Below are positions 1 through 61,229 of a stretch of DNA of 64,000 nucleotides, piece after piece. The notes below the pieces were generated by a model. That model was not told where the DNA came from. It saw only the letters and a program-made list of their open reading frames with translations, and did not search any database. The position numbers were made by a program, and so were the translations under genes. The first letter of the stretch is position 1. Every line of letters begins with the position of its first letter. The DNA lies in sequence record PP355766.1. One strand, 5' to 3'.

Positions 1-3000
1 ACCATCTGCACCATCCTTGCCTCTAGCGTCAAACTCATTGAGAATCCACGCAGTAGGGAAAGCACCTAACTCCACCTTAGCCCGACTTATGACGTTGGTT
101 CCGCCTGCCGCATTTACAGAGAATCTCAGCGAGATATAGTCTGTATTAGCCCCTGTGGTAATAGTTAGGGAGTGTCTCCCTGCCTTGTTAGTCTCCAGGT
201 AATTATTTCTAACAAAGGAGTTACCATCTCCATTGTCAAACTGAAGTACAAACAACCGAGCTTTCGTAGCTTCATCCACTTCCCAAGAAACCGTATACAT
301 AGTGCTCTTCTGAACAGGTATGAAGTACGTTCCAGGGCCAAAGTACGGTTGAGTATACGCATCAGTTTCGGCAGCCCCAGCAGTCACCCTAAATCTTAAC
401 TGGTCGTAGTTTTTACTAATTGAAGAACCACTTCCTTTTGCACTCTGGATAGAGGCCATCCACTCTTTAAATGACCAGAAGTTTTCACCTACACCAGAGG
501 CATCGATTCGCACAGGGTCAGACCAAGTACCAATGATAACATTAGTTCCACCATCAAATGTTGCAGTAGACATCCATAGAGGAGATCCGTCTGGTGGTGA
601 ATCGAACCAATCCGTAGGTTTGTTACCAGTTGGTTTAGCAGGTTTAGTCTCAGAGATACGGAAGATGATATTGGTGTAATTACCTGTCTTACCGTCAGGC
701 CCAATCTCACCTTTTTCACCAACTGCGCGGATTGCTGGACCCCAAACACCGTCAACGTTCTGACGCATGTATAGGTCGCCAGTCTGGAAGGTATCATGCC
801 AGTTACTAGCAGAGCTATCCTTAGACCACTGCACTAAAACTGATTTACCTACTAGACCAATACTATCTGAGTACTCTACTTGATACTCGGTTTTCTCTCC
901 CCCTTCTTCCAGCTTGATCATACTCCACGTAGTCGCTACGTTAAGAGTGAGGGCGGAAGGACGTAGGGTTAAGTAATTCATACCTGTTGGAACTACAAAA
1001 GTACGCTTAACTTTTATAGACGTCCCGGTATTCAGTTCTTCTATGTAAGTGGACTGAGACGAATCTGGGTTAGCCTGCCAGAATATAATATCTCTGGTCT
1101 GTACTTCGCTAGCCGCATCGATATTATAGGTTAGAGTGTAGCGTTTACCAGGAGTCACTGGATGAGAGAACGCACCGCCACCAACATACGGAGTTGCATA
1201 GCACCCTGGAGCCGAGTTATCGGTCCCGGAAGTACGGGTCAAGGTATGCGTTAGCTTCTCGATATCGTTCTTAGATGTGCCGGATTCCGTACCAGTCATT
1301 GCTGCCATCCACTTACGGACTGCGAACAGGTTAGGGTTGATAGTACCGTCCAGACGGACCGGGTTAGACCACGTACCCTGCAGCTGACCGCTAGCGTTCA
1401 TTGTGCCCTTAGTCATCCATAAAGGGCTGCCAACCGGAGGAGCATCACTCCAGCTACCTGGGTTGTTACCAGTAGGTGTTCCTGGCTTAGTATCCTGAAC
1501 GATAAACTTCATTGAAATGTAGTCACCATCAGTACCATCAGCACCGTCTTCACCAACTGCACGAATAGCGCCACCCCAAACCCCATTAACCTGCTGACGC
1601 ATGAAAATGTCGCCAGTTTGGAAACCAGCATGCCAATTAGTAGATCCATCCTTAGACCACTGGACGTTTACAGAGTTACCAGCAGGGCCTTGAGCACCAG
1701 TTGCACCAGTATCACCTTTGTCCCCTTTGTTACCCTGTGGACCTTGTGGACCTTGAGAACCTGTAGCACCAGTTGCACCGGTATCACCTTTCTCCCCATC
1801 CATTTCCAGAGCAAAAATGTGGATATCAGTAACGTAAGCTTTACCTAGGTCACTACCCGAAGACCCGGCCATCTGGATCCACGGCATTGCTATACCGGTA
1901 TTAGAACTGCCAACAGTAAACTCTTTTTCGATGTAGGACCAGCCACCAGGTACTACAGTACCTTGTGCAATAATGAGGGTTCCTTGCCAGTCAACAACTC
2001 CATCGGCCGCCCTTACAATTCGCATCCCCATGTTGATATTGACTTTGGATTCACTAGCCATTATCCACATACCTAGTCTATATTTCTGACCAGCTACTAC
2101 AGGGAATGAGTTAGCATCTTCTATACAGTCCCTAGCAGAGATTACCAAGGCCTTACTGAAGCCTGCGGCTACAATTGTGGCACCAGAAACCCCTTGGACA
2201 CTACCAGTCGACCAGGTACCCTTATTTCCATTCTCGAATGAAGTAGTAATAACGCGATCATAACCTTTTGCAAGGATAGATTTAGTAGTTGCCACTCTGC
2301 GAACCACGGCACCGTAAGTAGGGTGTACCGCACGTAAGTCGACCCAACCGTTGATAACATCAGTACCCGCCGGCATACCTTTTAAAGTATATTTGCCCGC
2401 TGAAGTAATATCAGCATCAAGGTTATTCTTCTCCATAGTACTGAAGGTGCATTCTGAGGTGATATCCTTCGCCCCATAGAATACTTTGAAGTCACCAGAA
2501 CCAGTACTGTAGTTTTGCACGTAACCAGCATAGTTCGCCAGAACTGTGGAACCTTCGTTGGTCAGAAGACCTACGAGAGCGTTAGAACCATCATCTAGGC
2601 GCACAATAGTGATCTGATCGGTAATACCATCACAAACAGCTGTAACTACTACAGACTTCGATGTTTTGAAGTTAGCGGCAGTCAGTGTAGCACCAGTATT
2701 ACTAGTACTTGTTAGTGTAATACTACCACCTTTCTCGTCTTTGGCAGACCACGTAACGTTAGCCGTAGTATTCTGACGGAAAGCCTGGAACAGGATGGTT
2801 GCATCGGACTTCAGTTTACCTTCTGCGTCGTACGTAAACGTCTGACCGAGAGAAGAGAGGCTGAATCCTTTTGCATTATCACCCTTAGCACCTTGCGGGC
2901 CTTGGTTACCCTGTGGACCCTGATTACCCTGAGGCCCTTGTGGACCCTGAGTACCTTGATCCCCCTTTTCACCGATACTGTCGGAAGCTTCTACGCTATA

Positions 3001-5751
3001 AGCGGTAGACTTAATGCCTTCTTCAAGTTTTAAGTTGGAGTAAGTAACCGTTGCTCCGGCAGTACGAACACCTGGACGGAAGCTCAGGAACTTAGTATCA
3101 GCACGAGTGATAATCTTAGCTTCCTGCTTACCTTTAGCTCCGGTCAGTAACTCTTGGAAATTAGTAAAACTTCCAGTAATACTAGAGAACTCTAGTAACA
3201 GGTCTCTCAAAGCAAAGCTGGTACTATCAGTACTAACCTCATAAGTGAAGATGTACGACGTGTTCGGCTTTACAGGAATCTCAACTATAGGCCCCTGCGA
3301 ACCTTGGAAAGGAACAGGGTGTGCACCCGGTCCTGTAGAAGAGGTGGTACTTTCTGTGTTGGTTATAGTAAAGCTGAGGGTATCAGGATTCTTAACCATG
3401 GTACCATTGCTCATTCCGGTCCACTGCTCCAGTGTTTTCTTAACTGGATACAGGTTTACCCCAATGCCTTCACCATCAATACGAACTGGCTCTGACCATG
3501 TACCAACTAGAGCGTTAGTCTGTCCGTTAAACTCGGCCTTAACCATCCATAGCGGGTTTCCCTGAGGAGGTGCATCTGACCAACCTGAAGGAGCCTGTCC
3601 CGTAGGAGTATCAGGTTTTTCAGCTGCCACACGGAAACGCATCCCAATGTAGTTACCTTTAGACCCCGGAGTACCATTAGTACCATCTTCCCCGACTGCA
3701 CGGATCGCTGAACTCCATCCACCGGTACCAACACGCTGACGCATGAAGATATCACCAGTAGTAAAGTTTGCATGCCAGTTAGTAGTACCATCTTTAGACC
3801 ACTGTACTTCTACTGAACCACCTGCCGGACCTTGTGGACCTTGTGGACCAGTAGCACCGGTGGCACCTTTCTCGCCGTCTACACGTAATGGTTCTGACCA
3901 GCCTTCTACCTTCAGTGCATTAGTATTACCATCGAATCTACCAGAACACATCCAAAGAGGGGTTCCAGTTGGTGGGGTACGGCTCCAACCACTAGGATCA
4001 TTGATATTACCTGGCTTCGTGGGCTTACTAGCATTAATCTGGTAAATCTGAACAGTGTAGTCCCCGTTGGAGCCATCAGTACCACCAGTACCTGGAACAC
4101 CAGACCACTGAGACGCGGCTGAGTAGTTGGTACCATCTACCAGAGCAGGAGGGCTCTTTTTAGGGTCAAGGGTACCCTGAACAACGTAAACGTTCTGGTT
4201 CTGTTCAGTACGGTTAGGTGGGAATGCGGACCATCCAGCTGGTGGATAAACTTGGTCAAGCGGGCGACTTGGCAGAGATGTCCCAAGTTTGTAAGCAAAT
4301 ACAGTCTGCTTACCCTGCATACCTGTTTCAAGGTCTACATCACCTCCCGGAGTACCAATCACAACGTTACCAGAAATACGAAGAGTGTCGCCATCCCAGC
4401 GTACATACTGAGTGTTATTACCAAGGTCAAACTTAGCCTTACCATCAGTGTTGTCAACACCCATCCAGACACCGCCTGCGTTATTACCGTACTTCTTACC
4501 CTGAGTGAAGATTGCCGGGTTGTCTTTACCGGTCAGGTTAGTAAGAATTACGTTAGCAGCATTAATGTCTTTAGTAATAACTTTACCATCGACGTTTACA
4601 ATCTTATTAACAGGGTCGAATGAAATCGGCGCTTTACCATTTTCATCGAGTATACCAAGAACTACTGCACCTGTAGCAGCATCGACTAAGAAAGTCTGCT
4701 CCCACTGATTAGTGTTAGAGTTCCAAAGTTTACCCTTGATACCTGCGTAGGTCATCTCTACACCGGTCTCGTTAATGAATGCGTTGTCGAAAGTAGTGCT
4801 CTCGTCTATAATATAAGTAACCTCGTTAGAGTTAGTTATAGACTGAGTATCCGGACCCCAAGCAACCGATAGCACACGAAAACGGTGGCGGATCTTATAA
4901 GGGAAGCTAGTGATAGTACCAGCTTTAGCTGCACCTACGTTTAGCTTATTAGCCTTAGTCCATCCAGTTTTTGCAAACTCATCGTTACTTATATACTGGA
5001 TGATGAATTCACGAACGTTAGCACCAGTGCCACGAGTCCAATCCCATTCTAGACGAACGTCAAAACGCTCCATACCGTCTTGAATGTGGGCAGTTTTGAA
5101 ACGCAGGTTAGTTGGGGCTGATGGAGGAGTGAAATTGTAGGTCAGGTTAAATAGGGAAGGCCAGGTATCATACCCAGAAACATCCACAGTGACACCGTCT
5201 GGCATAGTAACAACACCAGATACGCGGATATTATACCTACCAACAGGAACACCACCAAAGATGATCTGCTCAGTGATTGGGCCACGGTAGTATTTAGTCC
5301 AGGTACTAGAACCTTCCGGTTTCATTTCAATGGTAACGTATTCAGCTTCACCAGAAAGCTCTACGACAACCATAGGGGCACCAACACCCACGTCAACAGA
5401 TTCTGCAAAAGAAGACACCTTGGTGATCTTCGGAGCAGTTTTCATTTTGAAGTTAACAGTGCTAGAGAGGTTCATACCTACTTTAGCAGCCATCAGCTCT
5501 GCATCGACCATTGAGTCGTAGAAAGCACCCTGAGCAGAGTAGGTAGCGCCAGCGATTAAATTGTTAATTGTGGCAATGAAAGTATCAACGCCAGTAAAAT
5601 CCCTACGGGTGGTTACCCCACCCGTAGTTAGCCAGAAAGTTCTACCGATTACATCGTAATCGGAAAAGATTGAGTGCTGAATACTCGCAATCGTGTAACC
5701 GGTCACGATATTCTGCAATACCATTTGAGCTGGTGCTATGTTTGAAATCAT
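1..5751 (-). CDS. pb4: Giant central straight tail fibre (pb4-like N-terminus, collagen-like segments, repeated beta-sandwich modules); partial, runs off the left edge
   Basis: ATG at 5751-5749 abuts the pb3 TAA. Starts MISNIAPAQMVLQNIVTGYTIASIQHSIFSDYDVIGR, like T5 pb4. Hand-translated stretches are open down to base 1 (…NEFDARGKDGADG); no stop seen, consistent with its absence from the ORF track. Confidence 0.9.
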   Translation of the reverse strand, partial: MISNIAPAQMVLQNIVTGYTIASIQHSIFSDYDVIGRTFWLTTGGVTTRRDFTGVDTFIATINNLIAGATYSAQGAFYDSMVDAELMAAKVGMNLSSTVNFKMKTAPKITKVSSFAESVDVGVGAPMVVVELSGEAEYVTIEMKPEGSSTWTKYYRGPITEQIIFGGVPVGRYNIRVSGVVTMPDGVTVDVSGYDTWPSLFNLTYNFTPPSAPTNLRFKTAHIQDGMERFDVRLEWDWTRGTGANVREFIIQYISNDEFAKTGWTKANKLNVGAAKAGTITSFPYKIRHRFRVLSVAWGPDTQSITNSNEVTYIIDESTTFDNAFINETGVEMTYAGIKGKLWNSNTNQWEQTFLVDAATGAVVLGILDENGKAPISFDPVNKIVNVDGKVITKDINAANVILTNLTGKDNPAIFTQGKKYGNNAGGVWMGVDNTDGKAKFDLGNNTQYVRWDGDTLRISGNVVIGTPGGDVDLETGMQGKQTVFAYKLGTSLPSRPLDQVYPPAGWSAFPPNRTEQNQNVYVVQGTLDPKKSPPALVDGTNYSAASQWSGVPGTGGTDGSNGDYTVQIYQINASKPTKPGNINDPSGWSRTPPTGTPLWMCSGRFDGNTNALKVEGWSEPLRVDGEKGATGATGPQGPQGPAGGSVEVQWSKDGTTNWHANFTTGDIFMRQRVGTGGWSSAIRAVGEDGTNGTPGSKGNYIGMRFRVAAEKPDTPTGQAPSGWSDAPPQGNPLWMVKAEFNGQTNALVGTWSEPVRIDGEGIGVNLYPVKKTLEQWTGMSNGTMVKNPDTLSFTITNTESTTSSTGPGAHPVPFQGSQGPIVEIPVKPNTSYIFTYEVSTDSTSFALRDLLLEFSSITGSFTNFQELLTGAKGKQEAKIITRADTKFLSFRPGVRTAGATVTYSNLKLEEGIKSTAYSVEASDSIGEKGDQGTQGPQGPQGNQGPQGNQGPQGAKGDNAKGFSLSSLGQTFTYDAEGKLKSDATILFQAFRQNTTANVTWSAKDEKGGSITLTSTSNTGATLTAANFKTSKSVVVTAVCDGITDQITIVRLDDGSNALVGLLTNEGSTVLANYAGYVQNYSTGSGDFKVFYGAKDITSECTFSTMEKNNLDADITSAGKYTLKGMPAGTDVINGWVDLRAVHPTYGAVVRRVATTKSILAKGYDRVITTSFENGNKGTWSTGSVQGVSGATIVAAGFSKALVISARDCIEDANSFPVVAGQKYRLGMWIMASESKVNINMGMRIVRAADGVVDWQGTLIIAQGTVVPGGWSYIEKEFTVGSSNTGIAMPWIQMAGSSGSDLGKAYVTDIHIFALEMDGEKGDTGATGATGSQGPQGPQGNKGDKGDTGATGAQGPAGNSVNVQWSKDGSTNWHAGFQTGDIFMRQQVNGVWGGAIRAVGEDGADGTDGDYISMKFIVQDTKPGTPTGNNPGSWSDAPPVGSPLWMTKGTMNASGQLQGTWSNPVRLDGTINPNLFAVRKWMAAMTGTESGTSKNDIEKLTHTLTRTSGTDNSAPGCYATPYVGGGAFSHPVTPGKRYTLTYNIDAASEVQTRDIIFWQANPDSSQSTYIEELNTGTSIKVKRTFVVPTGMNYLTLRPSALTLNVATTWSMIKLEEGGEKTEYQVEYSDSIGLVGKSVLVQWSKDSSASNWHDTFQTGDLYMRQNVDGVWGPAIRAVGEKGEIGPDGKTGNYTNIIFRISETKPAKPTGNKPTDWFDSPPDGSPLWMSTATFDGGTNVIIGTWSDPVRIDASGVGENFWSFKEWMASIQSAKGSGSSISKNYDQLRFRVTAGAAETDAYTQPYFGPGTYFIPVQKSTMYTVSWEVDEATKARLFVLQFDNGDGNSFVRNNYLETNKAGRHSLTITTGANTDYISLRFSVNAAGGTNVISRAKVELGAFPTAWILNEFDARGKDGADG

Positions 5752-31722: not shown

Positions 31723-32127
31723 TTATTCTGCCGATTCTTTTACTTCGTCCTGAACGCCAACCATACGGGCGATAACGTCCAGTTGGTCGAGCTTCATTTG
31801 TTCCAGACTTGCCAAACCATCGGCATCATCAATCAGGCCGTCAGCAATGGCGTGCTGAGTGAGAACGCGCACATAGTGAGCTTTACGCAGGGAGGAACCG
31901 CCGCCGACTTTGCGCGGCTTATCGGACTTCTGATAAACCTTTGCGCTAACCAGTTTAGAGCGCACTTTAACATGCGATTCAGCACCGACAGCCTTTGCAA
32001 TATCGATAAGACCTTGCGAGTTGGCTACCTCCAGACCATCGGATGCAATAATGCCTTCATACATAGAAATGGCAGTAGCGGCGTTGGCTTCGTTCCATGC
32101 GAATTTTTCGGTTTTAGTAGCAGTCAT
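31723..32127 (-). CDS. A2: A2 protein (second-step transfer, DNA-binding)
   Basis: KFAWNE…VRSKL.SAK.YQKSDKPRKVGGGSS.RKAHYVRV matches recalled T5 A2. Confidence 0.95.
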   Translation of the reverse strand: MTATKTEKFAWNEANAATAISMYEGIIASDGLEVANSQGLIDIAKAVGAESHVKVRSKLVSAKVYQKSDKPRKVGGGSSLRKAHYVRVLTQHAIADGLIDDADGLASLEQMKLDQLDVIARMVGVQDEVKESAE

Positions 32128-59731: not shown

Positions 59732-59896
59732 TTATAAAGTATACATACGATTTAACACTTCAGCATTTGGCCGCATAGACTCCGCCTCTTTTTGAAATTG
59801 TTCATCCAGTAATTTCAGGCGTTTTCTAAGCATGTCCTGATCCTTTTCAGTCAGGACGACGTTTTTAGATATTTCAAATAGCTCCTGAAGTGTCAT
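59732..59896 (-). CDS. Microprotein (54 aa, MTLQELFEISKN…)
   Basis: GAGG RBS-like sequence in the tRNA-Leu 3' end; hand-translated. Confidence 0.6.
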   Translation of the reverse strand: MTLQELFEISKNVVLTEKDQDMLRKRLKLLDEQFQKEAESMRPNAEVLNRMYTL

Positions 59897-60530: not shown

Positions 60531-60561
60531 TAGGTAAGCCCTCTCATTAATTTATACAATT

Positions 60562-60590
60562 ATTATATTATAAATAAGAGCGTTTAGCAA
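60562..60590 (-). promoter_or_regulatory. T5-type early promoter
   Basis: AAAATTCAT-TTGCTA-N17-TATAAT. Confidence 0.85.
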
Positions 60591-60616
60591 ATGAATTTTA
60601 GAACTTTCGGGATATT

Positions 60617-60830
60617 GCCACCCTCAGTCGATGCCACTACTTGAGACGTTATAGGCAATCTATCTCAAGTTGTCTGCCCCATTGCTTTCAGTGATTTCTG
60701 CACGCAGAAATTCTTCTTGACTGGAGGACTTTACCACGTCAAACGGCCGGAAATCGGTGGCTTATTTTATCCTGTCACCCATCACCTGCTTGTCTGAGTT
60801 TAATCAGAGAGCCTGTAACGGGCTACTTGG
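60617..60830 (-). ncRNA. Candidate multibranch ncRNA
   Basis: GCCACC/GGTGGC closes three hairpins (ACTTGAGA/TCTCAAGT, ATTTCTGC/GCAGAAAT, TTGAC/GTCAA); no ORF. Confidence 0.55.
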
Positions 60831-60834
60831 GATT

Positions 60835-60969
60835 TGGAAGTATCAGTTGGATTCGAACCAACGCACCAGCTAACCTAGAGATCACCAGACGTTTCCAAGT
60901 CTGCTCACTAACGGCCAGCCGCTTTACCATGAGCCTTAGGACTATTCAGCTCCATAAGCTATTGATACT
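60835..60969 (-). ncRNA. 135-nt tRNA-like RNA with a branched insert in place of the anticodon loop
   Basis: Acceptor AGTATCA/TGATACT-T-CCA; T arm GTTGG-TTCGAAT-CCAAC; D-like AGCT-TATGG-AGCT; about 85-nt structured central arm. Confidence 0.75.
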
Positions 60970-60976
60970 ATTAATT

Positions 60977-61054
60977 TGGTGCAACCGGTTCGATTTGAAC
61001 GAACGACCCCTGGACTTTCAAACCAGTGCTCTCACCTCGCTGAGCTACAGTTGC
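60977..61054 (-). tRNA. tRNA-Phe(GAA)
   Basis: Cloverleaf, TT-GAA-AG, CCA. Confidence 0.9.
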
Positions 61055-61083
61055 GTAATTCATGCCTGCTCCTTTGAATCAAG

Positions 61084-61180
61084 AAGTCCACCCCGGTCTT
61101 TGGGTCTTTGCAGTACATCACGCTGCTCTGATGTTTGGTGGAACTTGGGAGACTACGTGTTACTCCCCTCACAGACCGGG
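61084..61180 (-). ncRNA. Candidate structured RNA between tRNA-Lys and tRNA-Phe
   Basis: CCCGGTCT/AGACCGGG closing helix with inner ACATCA/TGATGT and GGGAG/CTCCC hairpins. Confidence 0.45.
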
Positions 61181-61229
61181 ATTCCCCGCTATCCATGATG
61201 CTTAACCGATTAGCTGAAGTCCCATAATG

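Follow-up and report, generated by a model that had tools for sequence, protein, structure and literature searches.

A gene for a 135-nucleotide (nt) RNA shaped like a transfer RNA (tRNA) lies in the 64,000-nt stretch of sequence record PP355766.1 analysed here, which we call the window. The gene is real, conserved and unannotated; its outer tRNA features hold, but the inner fold first proposed for it from the letters of the DNA and their open reading frames (the sequence-only reading) fails. The aligned relatives favour a true cloverleaf with two expansions, a hairpin inserted in the D loop and an unbranched 'anticodon' arm of 51 nt. On balance, we somewhat favour reading the element as a non-decoding, tRNA-shaped stable RNA on a natural 'tRNA scaffold', matured by tRNA-processing enzymes and likely acting by mimicry. 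Its position in the window is as follows; nt N of the RNA corresponds to window coordinate 60970-N (nt 1 = 60969, nt 135 = 60835).

60835–60969, minus strand: the whole 135-nt tRNA-like RNA, based on the sequence as read, a covariance model and conservation in 66 phage records
60970–60976, minus strand: the 7-nt spacer AAUUAAU between the CCA of tRNA-Phe and the element, which moves with the element as a 142-nt cassette

The window is 99–100% identical to T5-like phages of Klebsiella (Sugarlandvirus, Demerecviridae). ARAGORN finds 13 tRNA genes in it, all on the minus strand, at 58.6–63.8 kb. The placement of a 135-nt tRNA-like gene inside a tRNA operon, as first proposed, is borne out by the minus-strand reading: tRNA-Phe is found at 60977–61054 (ARAGORN) and its CCA precedes the element by 7 nt. 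No terminator-like site was found nearby on the minus strand between the element and its neighbours, and the element is placed in the phage tRNA operon as any other member. Two slots of the array are occupied across the phages. In the clade of the window, the 142-nt cassette lies between the tRNA-Phe CCA and a noncoding block of 275 nt, with CCAAAT at both junctions. In the KPN4/Sealy clade, the element is found in the gap between tRNA-Leu and tRNA-Pro, with spacers of 5–7 nt, and the 275-nt block adjoins tRNA-Phe directly.

By blastn, the element is present in 68 phage records, 66 of them with at least 80% coverage; these 66 are Sugarland-type phages of Klebsiella or Raoultella, plus 'Bacteriophage Eos'. 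A partial match (73% identity) is found in Proteus phage PM135. A metagenome scan gave 65 matches, of which three contigs contain the element and the remainder are ordinary tRNA-Ser(GGA) genes. Two pattern scans of IMG/VR returned known genomes and chance coding matches only, with no further relatives. A distant blastn search with the PM135 copy also gave no new relatives, its extra matches being to an ordinary tRNA 3′ end that PM135 has acquired. The covariance model (R1) scores 166.5 bits on the window copy, 168.9 on Sugarland and 102.5 on PM135, vs at most 30 bits on ordinary tRNAs and 12.8 bits on RNA2, a tRNA-like RNA of phage T5. The RNA family is real but taxonomically narrow.

None of the genome records inspected carries an RNA annotation at the element, ARAGORN calls neither a tRNA nor a transfer-messenger RNA (tmRNA) there, and Rfam at gathering thresholds gives no match. 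A permissive Rfam search gives only a sub-threshold tRNA match (21.8 bits vs a threshold of 29), in which nt 27–132 are aligned and the 5′ acceptor strand is left unpaired. Several records put small 'hypothetical proteins' on the opposite strand. One of these is an open reading frame (ORF) of 38 amino acids at 60757–60873 of the window (plus strand), with CPT_Sugarland_076 as its Sugarland equivalent. That the region codes for this protein is extremely improbable: the frame begins with GTG, lies on the strand opposite to the operon and overlaps an RNA in which the substitutions respect base pairing. It also crosses the boundary of the element with the downstream block, and the two are not adjacent in the KPN4/Sealy clade, which shows the frame to be spurious.

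The outer parts of the RNA are those of a tRNA and are located as follows.

60963–60969, minus strand: 5′ strand of the acceptor stem (nt 1–7), which pairs with nt 125–131
60839–60845, minus strand: 3′ strand of the acceptor stem (nt 125–131), which pairs with nt 1–7
60960–60962, minus strand: linker A8 U9 A10, with U9 invariant and in the place of tRNA U8
60863–60868, minus strand: short variable loop of 6 nt (nt 102–107); the long variable arm of class II tRNAs is absent
60846–60862, minus strand: T arm (nt 108–124), 100% paired, in which U110–A122 becomes A–U in PM135
60835–60838, minus strand: discriminator U132 and CCA (nt 133–135), read directly

The perfect acceptor described by the sequence-only reading is there in the window letters, with 7 bp between AGUAUCA (nt 1–7) and UGAUACU (nt 125–131), and so are the discriminator U, the encoded CCA and the textbook T arm GUUGG-UUCGAAU-CCAAC. 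Compared with canonical tRNAs, the acceptor has the 7-bp stem, the discriminator and the CCA end, the last encoded in the window clade only; the KPN4/Sealy clade ends in UCA. The discriminator of the relatives is U, A or C, never G. The T arm has the canonical 5-bp stem and 7-nt UUCRAAU loop, and position 116 of this loop is G or A, like R57 of tRNA. In the acceptor stem, U5–A127 is replaced by C–G in two sequences and A7–U125 by G–C in six.

Looking at single nucleotides, the 16 aligned sequences, PM135 included, are invariant at U9 (as tRNA U8), A15 (as A14), G42 G43 (as G18 G19) and A45 (as A21) and in the T loop. The corresponding tRNA positions build the core and elbow of the molecule. 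The L shape suggested for this tRNA mimic is plausible, since the nucleotides that build the elbow are invariant. The acceptor stem, T arm, D stem and elbow nucleotides are canonical and under purifying selection.

Concerning the inner fold, base pairs were counted for four fold models in alignment A2, which contains 16 copies, 14 of them distinct.

Fold of the sequence-only reading: 92.9% of pair cells paired, 5 pairs changed on both sides
Rfam-like fold: 93.1% of pair cells paired, 7 pairs changed on both sides
Minimum free energy (MFE) fold of the single sequence: 95.4% of pair cells paired, 9 pairs changed on both sides
RNAalifold consensus fold: 98.1% of pair cells paired, 11 of 34 pairs changed on both sides (30 cells)

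When the consensus fold was slid along the alignment as a control, pairing went down to 22–41%. The acceptor stem, the T stem and the capping hairpin each contain compensatory double substitutions, and the Klebsiella-phage copies by themselves contain at least six separate compensatory pairs. In 15 Klebsiella-phage copies, every one of the 34 variable positions either lies in a loop or linker or keeps its pairing, and only one site varies in a core of 33 nt (nt 64–96). Without constraints, the MFE fold of the Sugarland and KPN4 variants is the cloverleaf; for Sealy the cloverleaf lies at about the minimum, and for the window and FZ41 no more than about 4 kcal/mol above it. The inner features of the consensus are the following.

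60921–60959, minus strand: expanded D arm (nt 11–49), from the RNAalifold consensus
60920, minus strand: G50, equivalent of tRNA position 26, which co-varies with nt 102 (60868, position 44)
60869–60919, minus strand: long unbranched 'anticodon' arm (nt 51–101), made of helix 51–57/95–101, an internal loop and a capping hairpin
60886–60903, minus strand: capping hairpin CAGAC-UUGGAAAC-GUCUG (nt 67–84), in which A70–U81 becomes G–C in PM135

The stem of the D arm (nt 11–14/46–49), GCUU/AAGC in the window sequence and ACUC/GAGU in that of KPN4, is 100% paired, and two of its four pairs are compensatory: G11–C49 becomes A–U in four sequences and U14–A46 becomes C–G in six. The D loop contains, in order, A15 (as A14), a hairpin (nt 17–22/35–41) and then G42 G43 U44 A45 (as G18 G19 N A21). 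The hairpin has a 12-nt apical loop (nt 23–34) with an invariant GUCCUA and is 98.8% paired. Its pair G20–C37 exchanges with A–U, both in the KPN4/Sealy clade and in Eos, which otherwise groups with the window. Compared with a canonical D arm (4-bp stem and a loop of about 7–11 nt), the stem and the equivalents of A14, G18 G19 and A21 are present and covarying, and the loop has a hairpin insert of about 26 nt.

In the long arm, the proximal helix 51–57/95–101 is 96.9% paired; U53–A99 and G55·U97 both become C–G in PM135, and G54·U98 becomes G–C in Sealy. The internal loop has a variable 5′ strand (nt 58–66) and a 3′ strand (nt 85–94, GUGAUCUCUA) that is invariant in the Klebsiella phages. The capping hairpin with its 8-nt loop had been described correctly from the window letters and is 100% paired across the alignment. 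A canonical anticodon arm has a 5-bp stem and a 7-nt loop, in a tRNA of about 70–95 nt; here the arm is 51 nt, the loop 8 nt and the whole RNA 135 nt. Between the two expanded arms, nt 50 and 102 (equivalents of tRNA positions 26 and 44) occur as G·U in seven sequences, A·C in six, G–C in two and A–U in one, and the exchange of G·U with A·C is the pattern expected of an isosteric wobble or tertiary pair.

The fold of the sequence-only reading, with a D-like hairpin, a CCUA/UAGG stem and a two-hairpin branch, was rejected on these pair counts. Its D-like hairpin AGCU-UAUGG-AGCU (nt 10–13/19–22) does exist in the window sequence, but only 75% of its cells are paired in the alignment, none of its pairs covaries and the KPN4/Sealy clade has it disrupted. 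The hairpin GCUCA…GCGGC/GCCGU…UGAGC does not survive: both strands have covarying partners elsewhere, the G50A variants disrupt it, and C67 would be shared with the next hairpin. The idea that a branched domain replaces the anticodon loop gives way to the unbranched arm and the second expansion in the D loop. The CCUA/UAGG pairing (nt 30–33/93–96) involves invariant bases only and competes with C56 C57–G95 G96; if real, it would be a tertiary contact. An Rfam-style tRNA made of nt 27–132 with a 41-nt insert in the anticodon loop was also rejected, as its 5′ acceptor strand is unpaired and its D stem has no double changes. In the single-sequence MFE fold, helix 10–14/34–38 is less consistent than the consensus D arm. 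A tandem duplication of the 5′ part of a tRNA (nt 1–26 and 27–50) was discarded, since the two segments are the two strands of one covarying hairpin. Finally, GGUGAUC (nt 84–90) is complementary to the 3′ tail of 16S ribosomal RNA; it is not conserved in PM135 and has no suitably spaced start codon, and it was treated as chance.

The PM135 copy has a history of its own. Its 3′ 32 nt (T arm, acceptor strand, CCA and spacer) repeat a segment found immediately upstream, where an HNH homing-endonuclease gene ends; the two repeat copies are at 2972–3003 (gene end) and 3113–3145 (3′ end of the element) of the stretch examined. The segment matches the 3′ end of common phage tRNAs, no complementary 5′ acceptor strand is found nearby, and the cloverleaf is energetically poor for this copy. 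The copy is chimeric and probably damaged, and the repeat looks like the trace of a recombination linked to homing, in which the element had its 3′ end exchanged. The same copy supplies compensatory changes in the inner helices.

This history bears on the reading of the element as a decaying pseudo-tRNA, a functionless by-product of the shuffling of tRNA arrays by homing endonucleases. In its favour are the shift in array position with the CCAAAT microhomology at the junctions, the chimeric copy beside an HNH gene, a divergence faster than that of true tRNAs and the narrow taxonomic range. The substitutions among the Klebsiella-phage copies speak against it, as all 34 variable sites spare or restore pairing and the compensatory pairs number at least six; so do the nearly uniform 33-nt core and the invariant elbow nucleotides. 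We hold decay to be distinctly improbable.

A second reading would make the element processing punctuation only, that is a ribonuclease P (RNase P) or 3′-end signal which separates neighbouring transcripts. The t-elements of plant mitochondria are tRNA-like processing signals of this kind. Selection is clearest on the minihelix of acceptor and T arm, and in the window the element separates tRNA-Phe from the structured noncoding block, both of which agree with such a role. In the KPN4/Sealy clade, however, the element sits between two tRNAs that need no extra signal. Covariation also maintains the D-arm insert and the long arm, the cap loop does not vary, and neither, among the Klebsiella phages, does the 3′ strand of the internal loop, all of which is more than punctuation needs. 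We consider punctuation alone to be very doubtful.

The cap loop points in another direction. Its first seven bases, UUGGAAA, are the anticodon loop of T5 tRNA-Ser2(GGA) and are also found in about 60 metagenomic tRNA-Ser(GGA) genes; the base that follows is C (U in KPN4). T5 has tRNAs for Ser(GCU), Ser(UGA) and Ser(GGA), of which the tRNA region of Sugarland (20 kb scanned) contains the first two and lacks Ser(GGA). The genes of PM135 run HNH gene – element – tRNA-Ser(UGA), which parallels hegC – Ser2(GGA) – Ser1(UGA) in T5. The cap loop, the Ser(GGA) gap and the gene order are leads, not proof, to an origin from tRNA-Ser(GGA) or to mimicry of it.

Compared with canonical tRNA-Ser(GGA), T5 Ser2 included, the element shares the UUGGAAA loop on a 5-bp stem, the cloverleaf topology, the T loop and the elbow nucleotides. 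It differs in the extra loop nucleotide, the 51-nt arm and the D-loop insert, in lacking the long variable arm and G73, and in being uncalled by ARAGORN and sub-threshold in Rfam. By the features of class II tRNA-Ser, it has a 6-nt variable loop and a discriminator U, A or C instead of G73. Descent from a class II tRNA-Ser was considered and not retained: R1 gives 46.9 bits on the tRNA-Ser(GCU) of PM135, a score that is unreliable since the PM135 copy, with its borrowed 3′ end, was used to train the model. Concerning the T5 gene itself, tRNA-Ser2(GGA) (4943–5036 of the stretch examined) overlaps hegC at its 5′ end, and the T5 record states that, in contrast to Ser1 and Ser3, it yields no suppressor when given an amber anticodon. 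It is possible that this T5 gene, too, is no ordinary serine tRNA.

These likenesses are also what a working, chargeable tRNA could display, such as an odd tRNA-Ser(GGA), which the 8-nt loop might make a quadruplet or frameshift decoder, or a tRNA that loses its inserts once transcribed. The identity of the loop, the lack of Ser(GGA) in the Sugarland region as opposed to T5, the mirrored gene order in PM135 and the intact acceptor, T arm and CCA would all suit it. We nevertheless give it little credence. The loop caps an arm of 51 nt where 17 nt would be usual, so the distance from anticodon to CCA cannot match that of a decoding tRNA, and the displacement of the anticodon-like loop by about a dozen base-pair steps, with a hairpin projecting at the elbow, would be expected to exclude the RNA from decoding. 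Seryl-tRNA synthetase requires the long variable arm; its absence and the variable discriminator, which is never G, argue against serylation. As regards removal of the inserts, the helices to be excised are themselves kept by compensatory changes, and no excision of a single segment was found that yields a canonical tRNA with helices fitting the covariation. Group I introns are the kind that we know of in bacterial and phage tRNA genes and are much larger than the insert here; we know of no bacterial or phage splicing system for inserts of this size.

Returning to the stable, non-decoding RNA that we favour, its course can be pictured from tRNA biology and from its shape. RNase P would cut the 5′ end and the 3′ end would be trimmed; the CCA would be encoded or, in the clade without it, added by the host CCA-adding enzyme. 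The tRNA body would confer stability, and the lengthened arm together with the elbow hairpin would keep the RNA from ribosomal decoding. By mimicry, the tRNA body and the Ser(GGA)-like anticodon loop might then be shown to a tRNA-binding factor, of which the likeliest would be a tRNA-targeting defence nuclease or a tRNA-modifying enzyme of the host, titrated or blocked by the RNA. A decoy or sponge role of this kind is an inference only. A mimic directed at defence would agree with what is known of T5-like phages, whose tRNA arrays act against host defences: phage tRNAs, including those of T5 type, neutralise the tRNA-cleaving defence PARIS (PMC11464382), as well as retron-Eco7 and Septu (PMC13096335). 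A bolder version makes the element a dedicated anti-defence decoy, matured by the host, which would present a Ser(GGA)-type loop on a long arm and a conserved elbow hairpin and would trap or jam a tRNA-directed immune nuclease or a tRNA-modifying enzyme of the host, with T5 RNA1/RNA2 and the T4 species 1 and 2 RNAs as parallel inventions; we see this as unlikely.

Several points weigh against the favoured account. The PM135 copy cannot close its acceptor stem, and this distant relative is either damaged or works differently. Between the two Klebsiella-phage clades the element has 88% identity, vs 93–100% for true tRNAs. The aligned copies are closely akin, with a mean column identity of 90%, which makes shuffle statistics overstate significance, and several of the double changes are single events inherited by one clade. 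The 8-nt loop can equally be read as U73–A78 closing a GGAA (GNRA) tetraloop, in which case the likeness to an anticodon loop would be accidental. The maturation and stability of the element are what we infer for a molecule of this shape, and to our knowledge no defence aimed at tRNA-Ser(GGA) has been described.

A number of observations concern the neighbourhood of the element and the records used. The Leu–Pro slot of the array is a hotspot of cassette exchange: in the window (59732–59896, minus strand) it contains an ORF of 54 amino acids, in Sugarland an RNA similar to T5 RNA2, and in Sealy and KPN4 the element. The spacer between tRNA-Lys and tRNA-Phe (61055–61229, minus strand, 175 nt) is 98–99% identical between the two Klebsiella-phage clades. 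It is thus conserved like the tRNAs and far above the element; it is unannotated, and its fold is not significant (z = -0.48). On the 3′ side of the element, the noncoding block (60560–60834, minus strand, about 275 nt) is about 89.5% identical between clades. Its first 240 nt (60595–60834) fold better than shuffled sequences (z = -2.4), a promoter-like site TTGCTA-17-TATAAT is found at its end (60590–60562), and the Sugarland record annotates two small opposite-strand ORFs in this region. The block may be another stable RNA or a leader. A second tRNA-Val(UAC) is called by ARAGORN in phage Sugarland (12654–12729 of the stretch scanned, minus strand), where it is unannotated and lies under the 'hypothetical protein' coding sequence gp156. 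The GenBank record PP355766.1 is 288,685 bp long, more than twice the related Sugarland-type genomes (about 110 kb), and is probably a concatenated or mixed assembly.

The element matters first for an old question, as the GenBank records of the tRNA-like stable RNAs of T4 and T5 still give no function. Its family is a clean example, with an expanded cloverleaf supported by covariation, a look-alike of an anticodon loop and two natural insertion sites in the array. It is also timely, now that phage tRNA arrays are seen to counter tRNA-cleaving defences (PARIS, retron-Eco7, Septu); if the decoy reading were true, a function would be at hand for a class of phage RNAs unexplained since the 1970s. 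For annotation, dozens of genomes of Klebsiella phages, among them some considered for therapy, have the gene overlooked or wrongly labelled as small proteins. For engineering, it offers a natural precedent for tRNA scaffolds with two insertion sites. An engineered 'tRNA scaffold', ascribed to Ponchon and Dardel in 2007, reportedly carries a foreign structured RNA in place of the anticodon loop, and E. coli processes and stabilises the chimera as it would a tRNA. Its design logic is shared with the element; it is man-made, with a single insertion, and the comparison is by analogy only.

Among natural RNAs, tmRNA and the YrlA-type Y RNAs are alike in that a larger noncoding RNA partly mimics a tRNA, and the sequence-only reading was right to set both aside. 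For tmRNA, there is no ARAGORN call and no Rfam match in the element, no tag reading frame and no pseudoknots. In YrlA, the stem made by the two ends binds Ro and the tRNA-like module lies inside; the ends of the element pair as an acceptor stem instead, and no Rfam Y RNA match is found.

The T5 reference (NC_005859) lists eight stable RNAs in its tRNA region, two of which, RNA1 and RNA2, are described as a 'tRNA-like stable RNA with unknown functions'. Identity of the element with a T5 stable RNA had been raised at the outset; by blastn, none of the eight annotated T5 stable RNAs shows detectable similarity to the tRNA region of the window. RNA2 (125 nt) and RNA1 (144 nt) share with the element the phage family and the setting within a tRNA array. 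RNA2 is also built along similar lines: its acceptor stem is 8 bp long, a T arm and a GG-bearing D-like hairpin are present, and its long central arm ends in a conserved 7-nt loop. It differs in having no sequence similarity to the window and in its cap loop, UUCGAUU vs UUGGAAAC in the element. Sugarland (NC_042093) contains, at about 31929–32051 (minus strand) and just after tRNA-Leu(UAA), an unannotated 123-nt tRNA-like RNA, brought to light by the search with R1, that is absent from the window. This RNA is clearly homologous to T5 RNA2: the two have in common UGAUGGGGAA, GUUCGAUUC and a long 3′ block, and the acceptor stem is different and still paired. Their long arm is capped by the conserved UUCGAUU loop, and the cap stem covaries. 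The T5 RNA2 family thus reaches beyond Tequintavirus, and since Sugarland has the RNA2 homologue and the element at separate loci, the two families are distinct and co-occur.

The species 1 RNA of T4 (rnaC, 139 nt; NC_000866, 70908–71046) is likewise an annotated small stable RNA at the end of a phage tRNA cluster. It has the same design as the element and is nearly equal to it in length: its terminal stem resembles an acceptor and adjoins a textbook T arm (CCGGG-UUCGAAU-CCCGG), and long hairpins stand in the places of the D and anticodon arms. It differs in that its terminal stem has two U·U mismatches, it has no Ser-like loop and no encoded CCA, and its phage belongs to the Straboviridae; R1 gives no match to it at E-values up to 10. 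We know of no function assigned to this RNA, and a literature search gave no paper that assigns one to T5 RNA1/RNA2 or to T4 rnaC/rnaD. The tRNA-like stable RNAs of phage tRNA clusters (T4 species 1 and 2, T5 RNA1 and RNA2) were described decades ago. The sequence features that describe this class, namely location in the operon, an acceptor-like stem with a T arm and a non-canonical remainder, are all found in the 135-nt RNA, which is a new family within this old and unexplained class.

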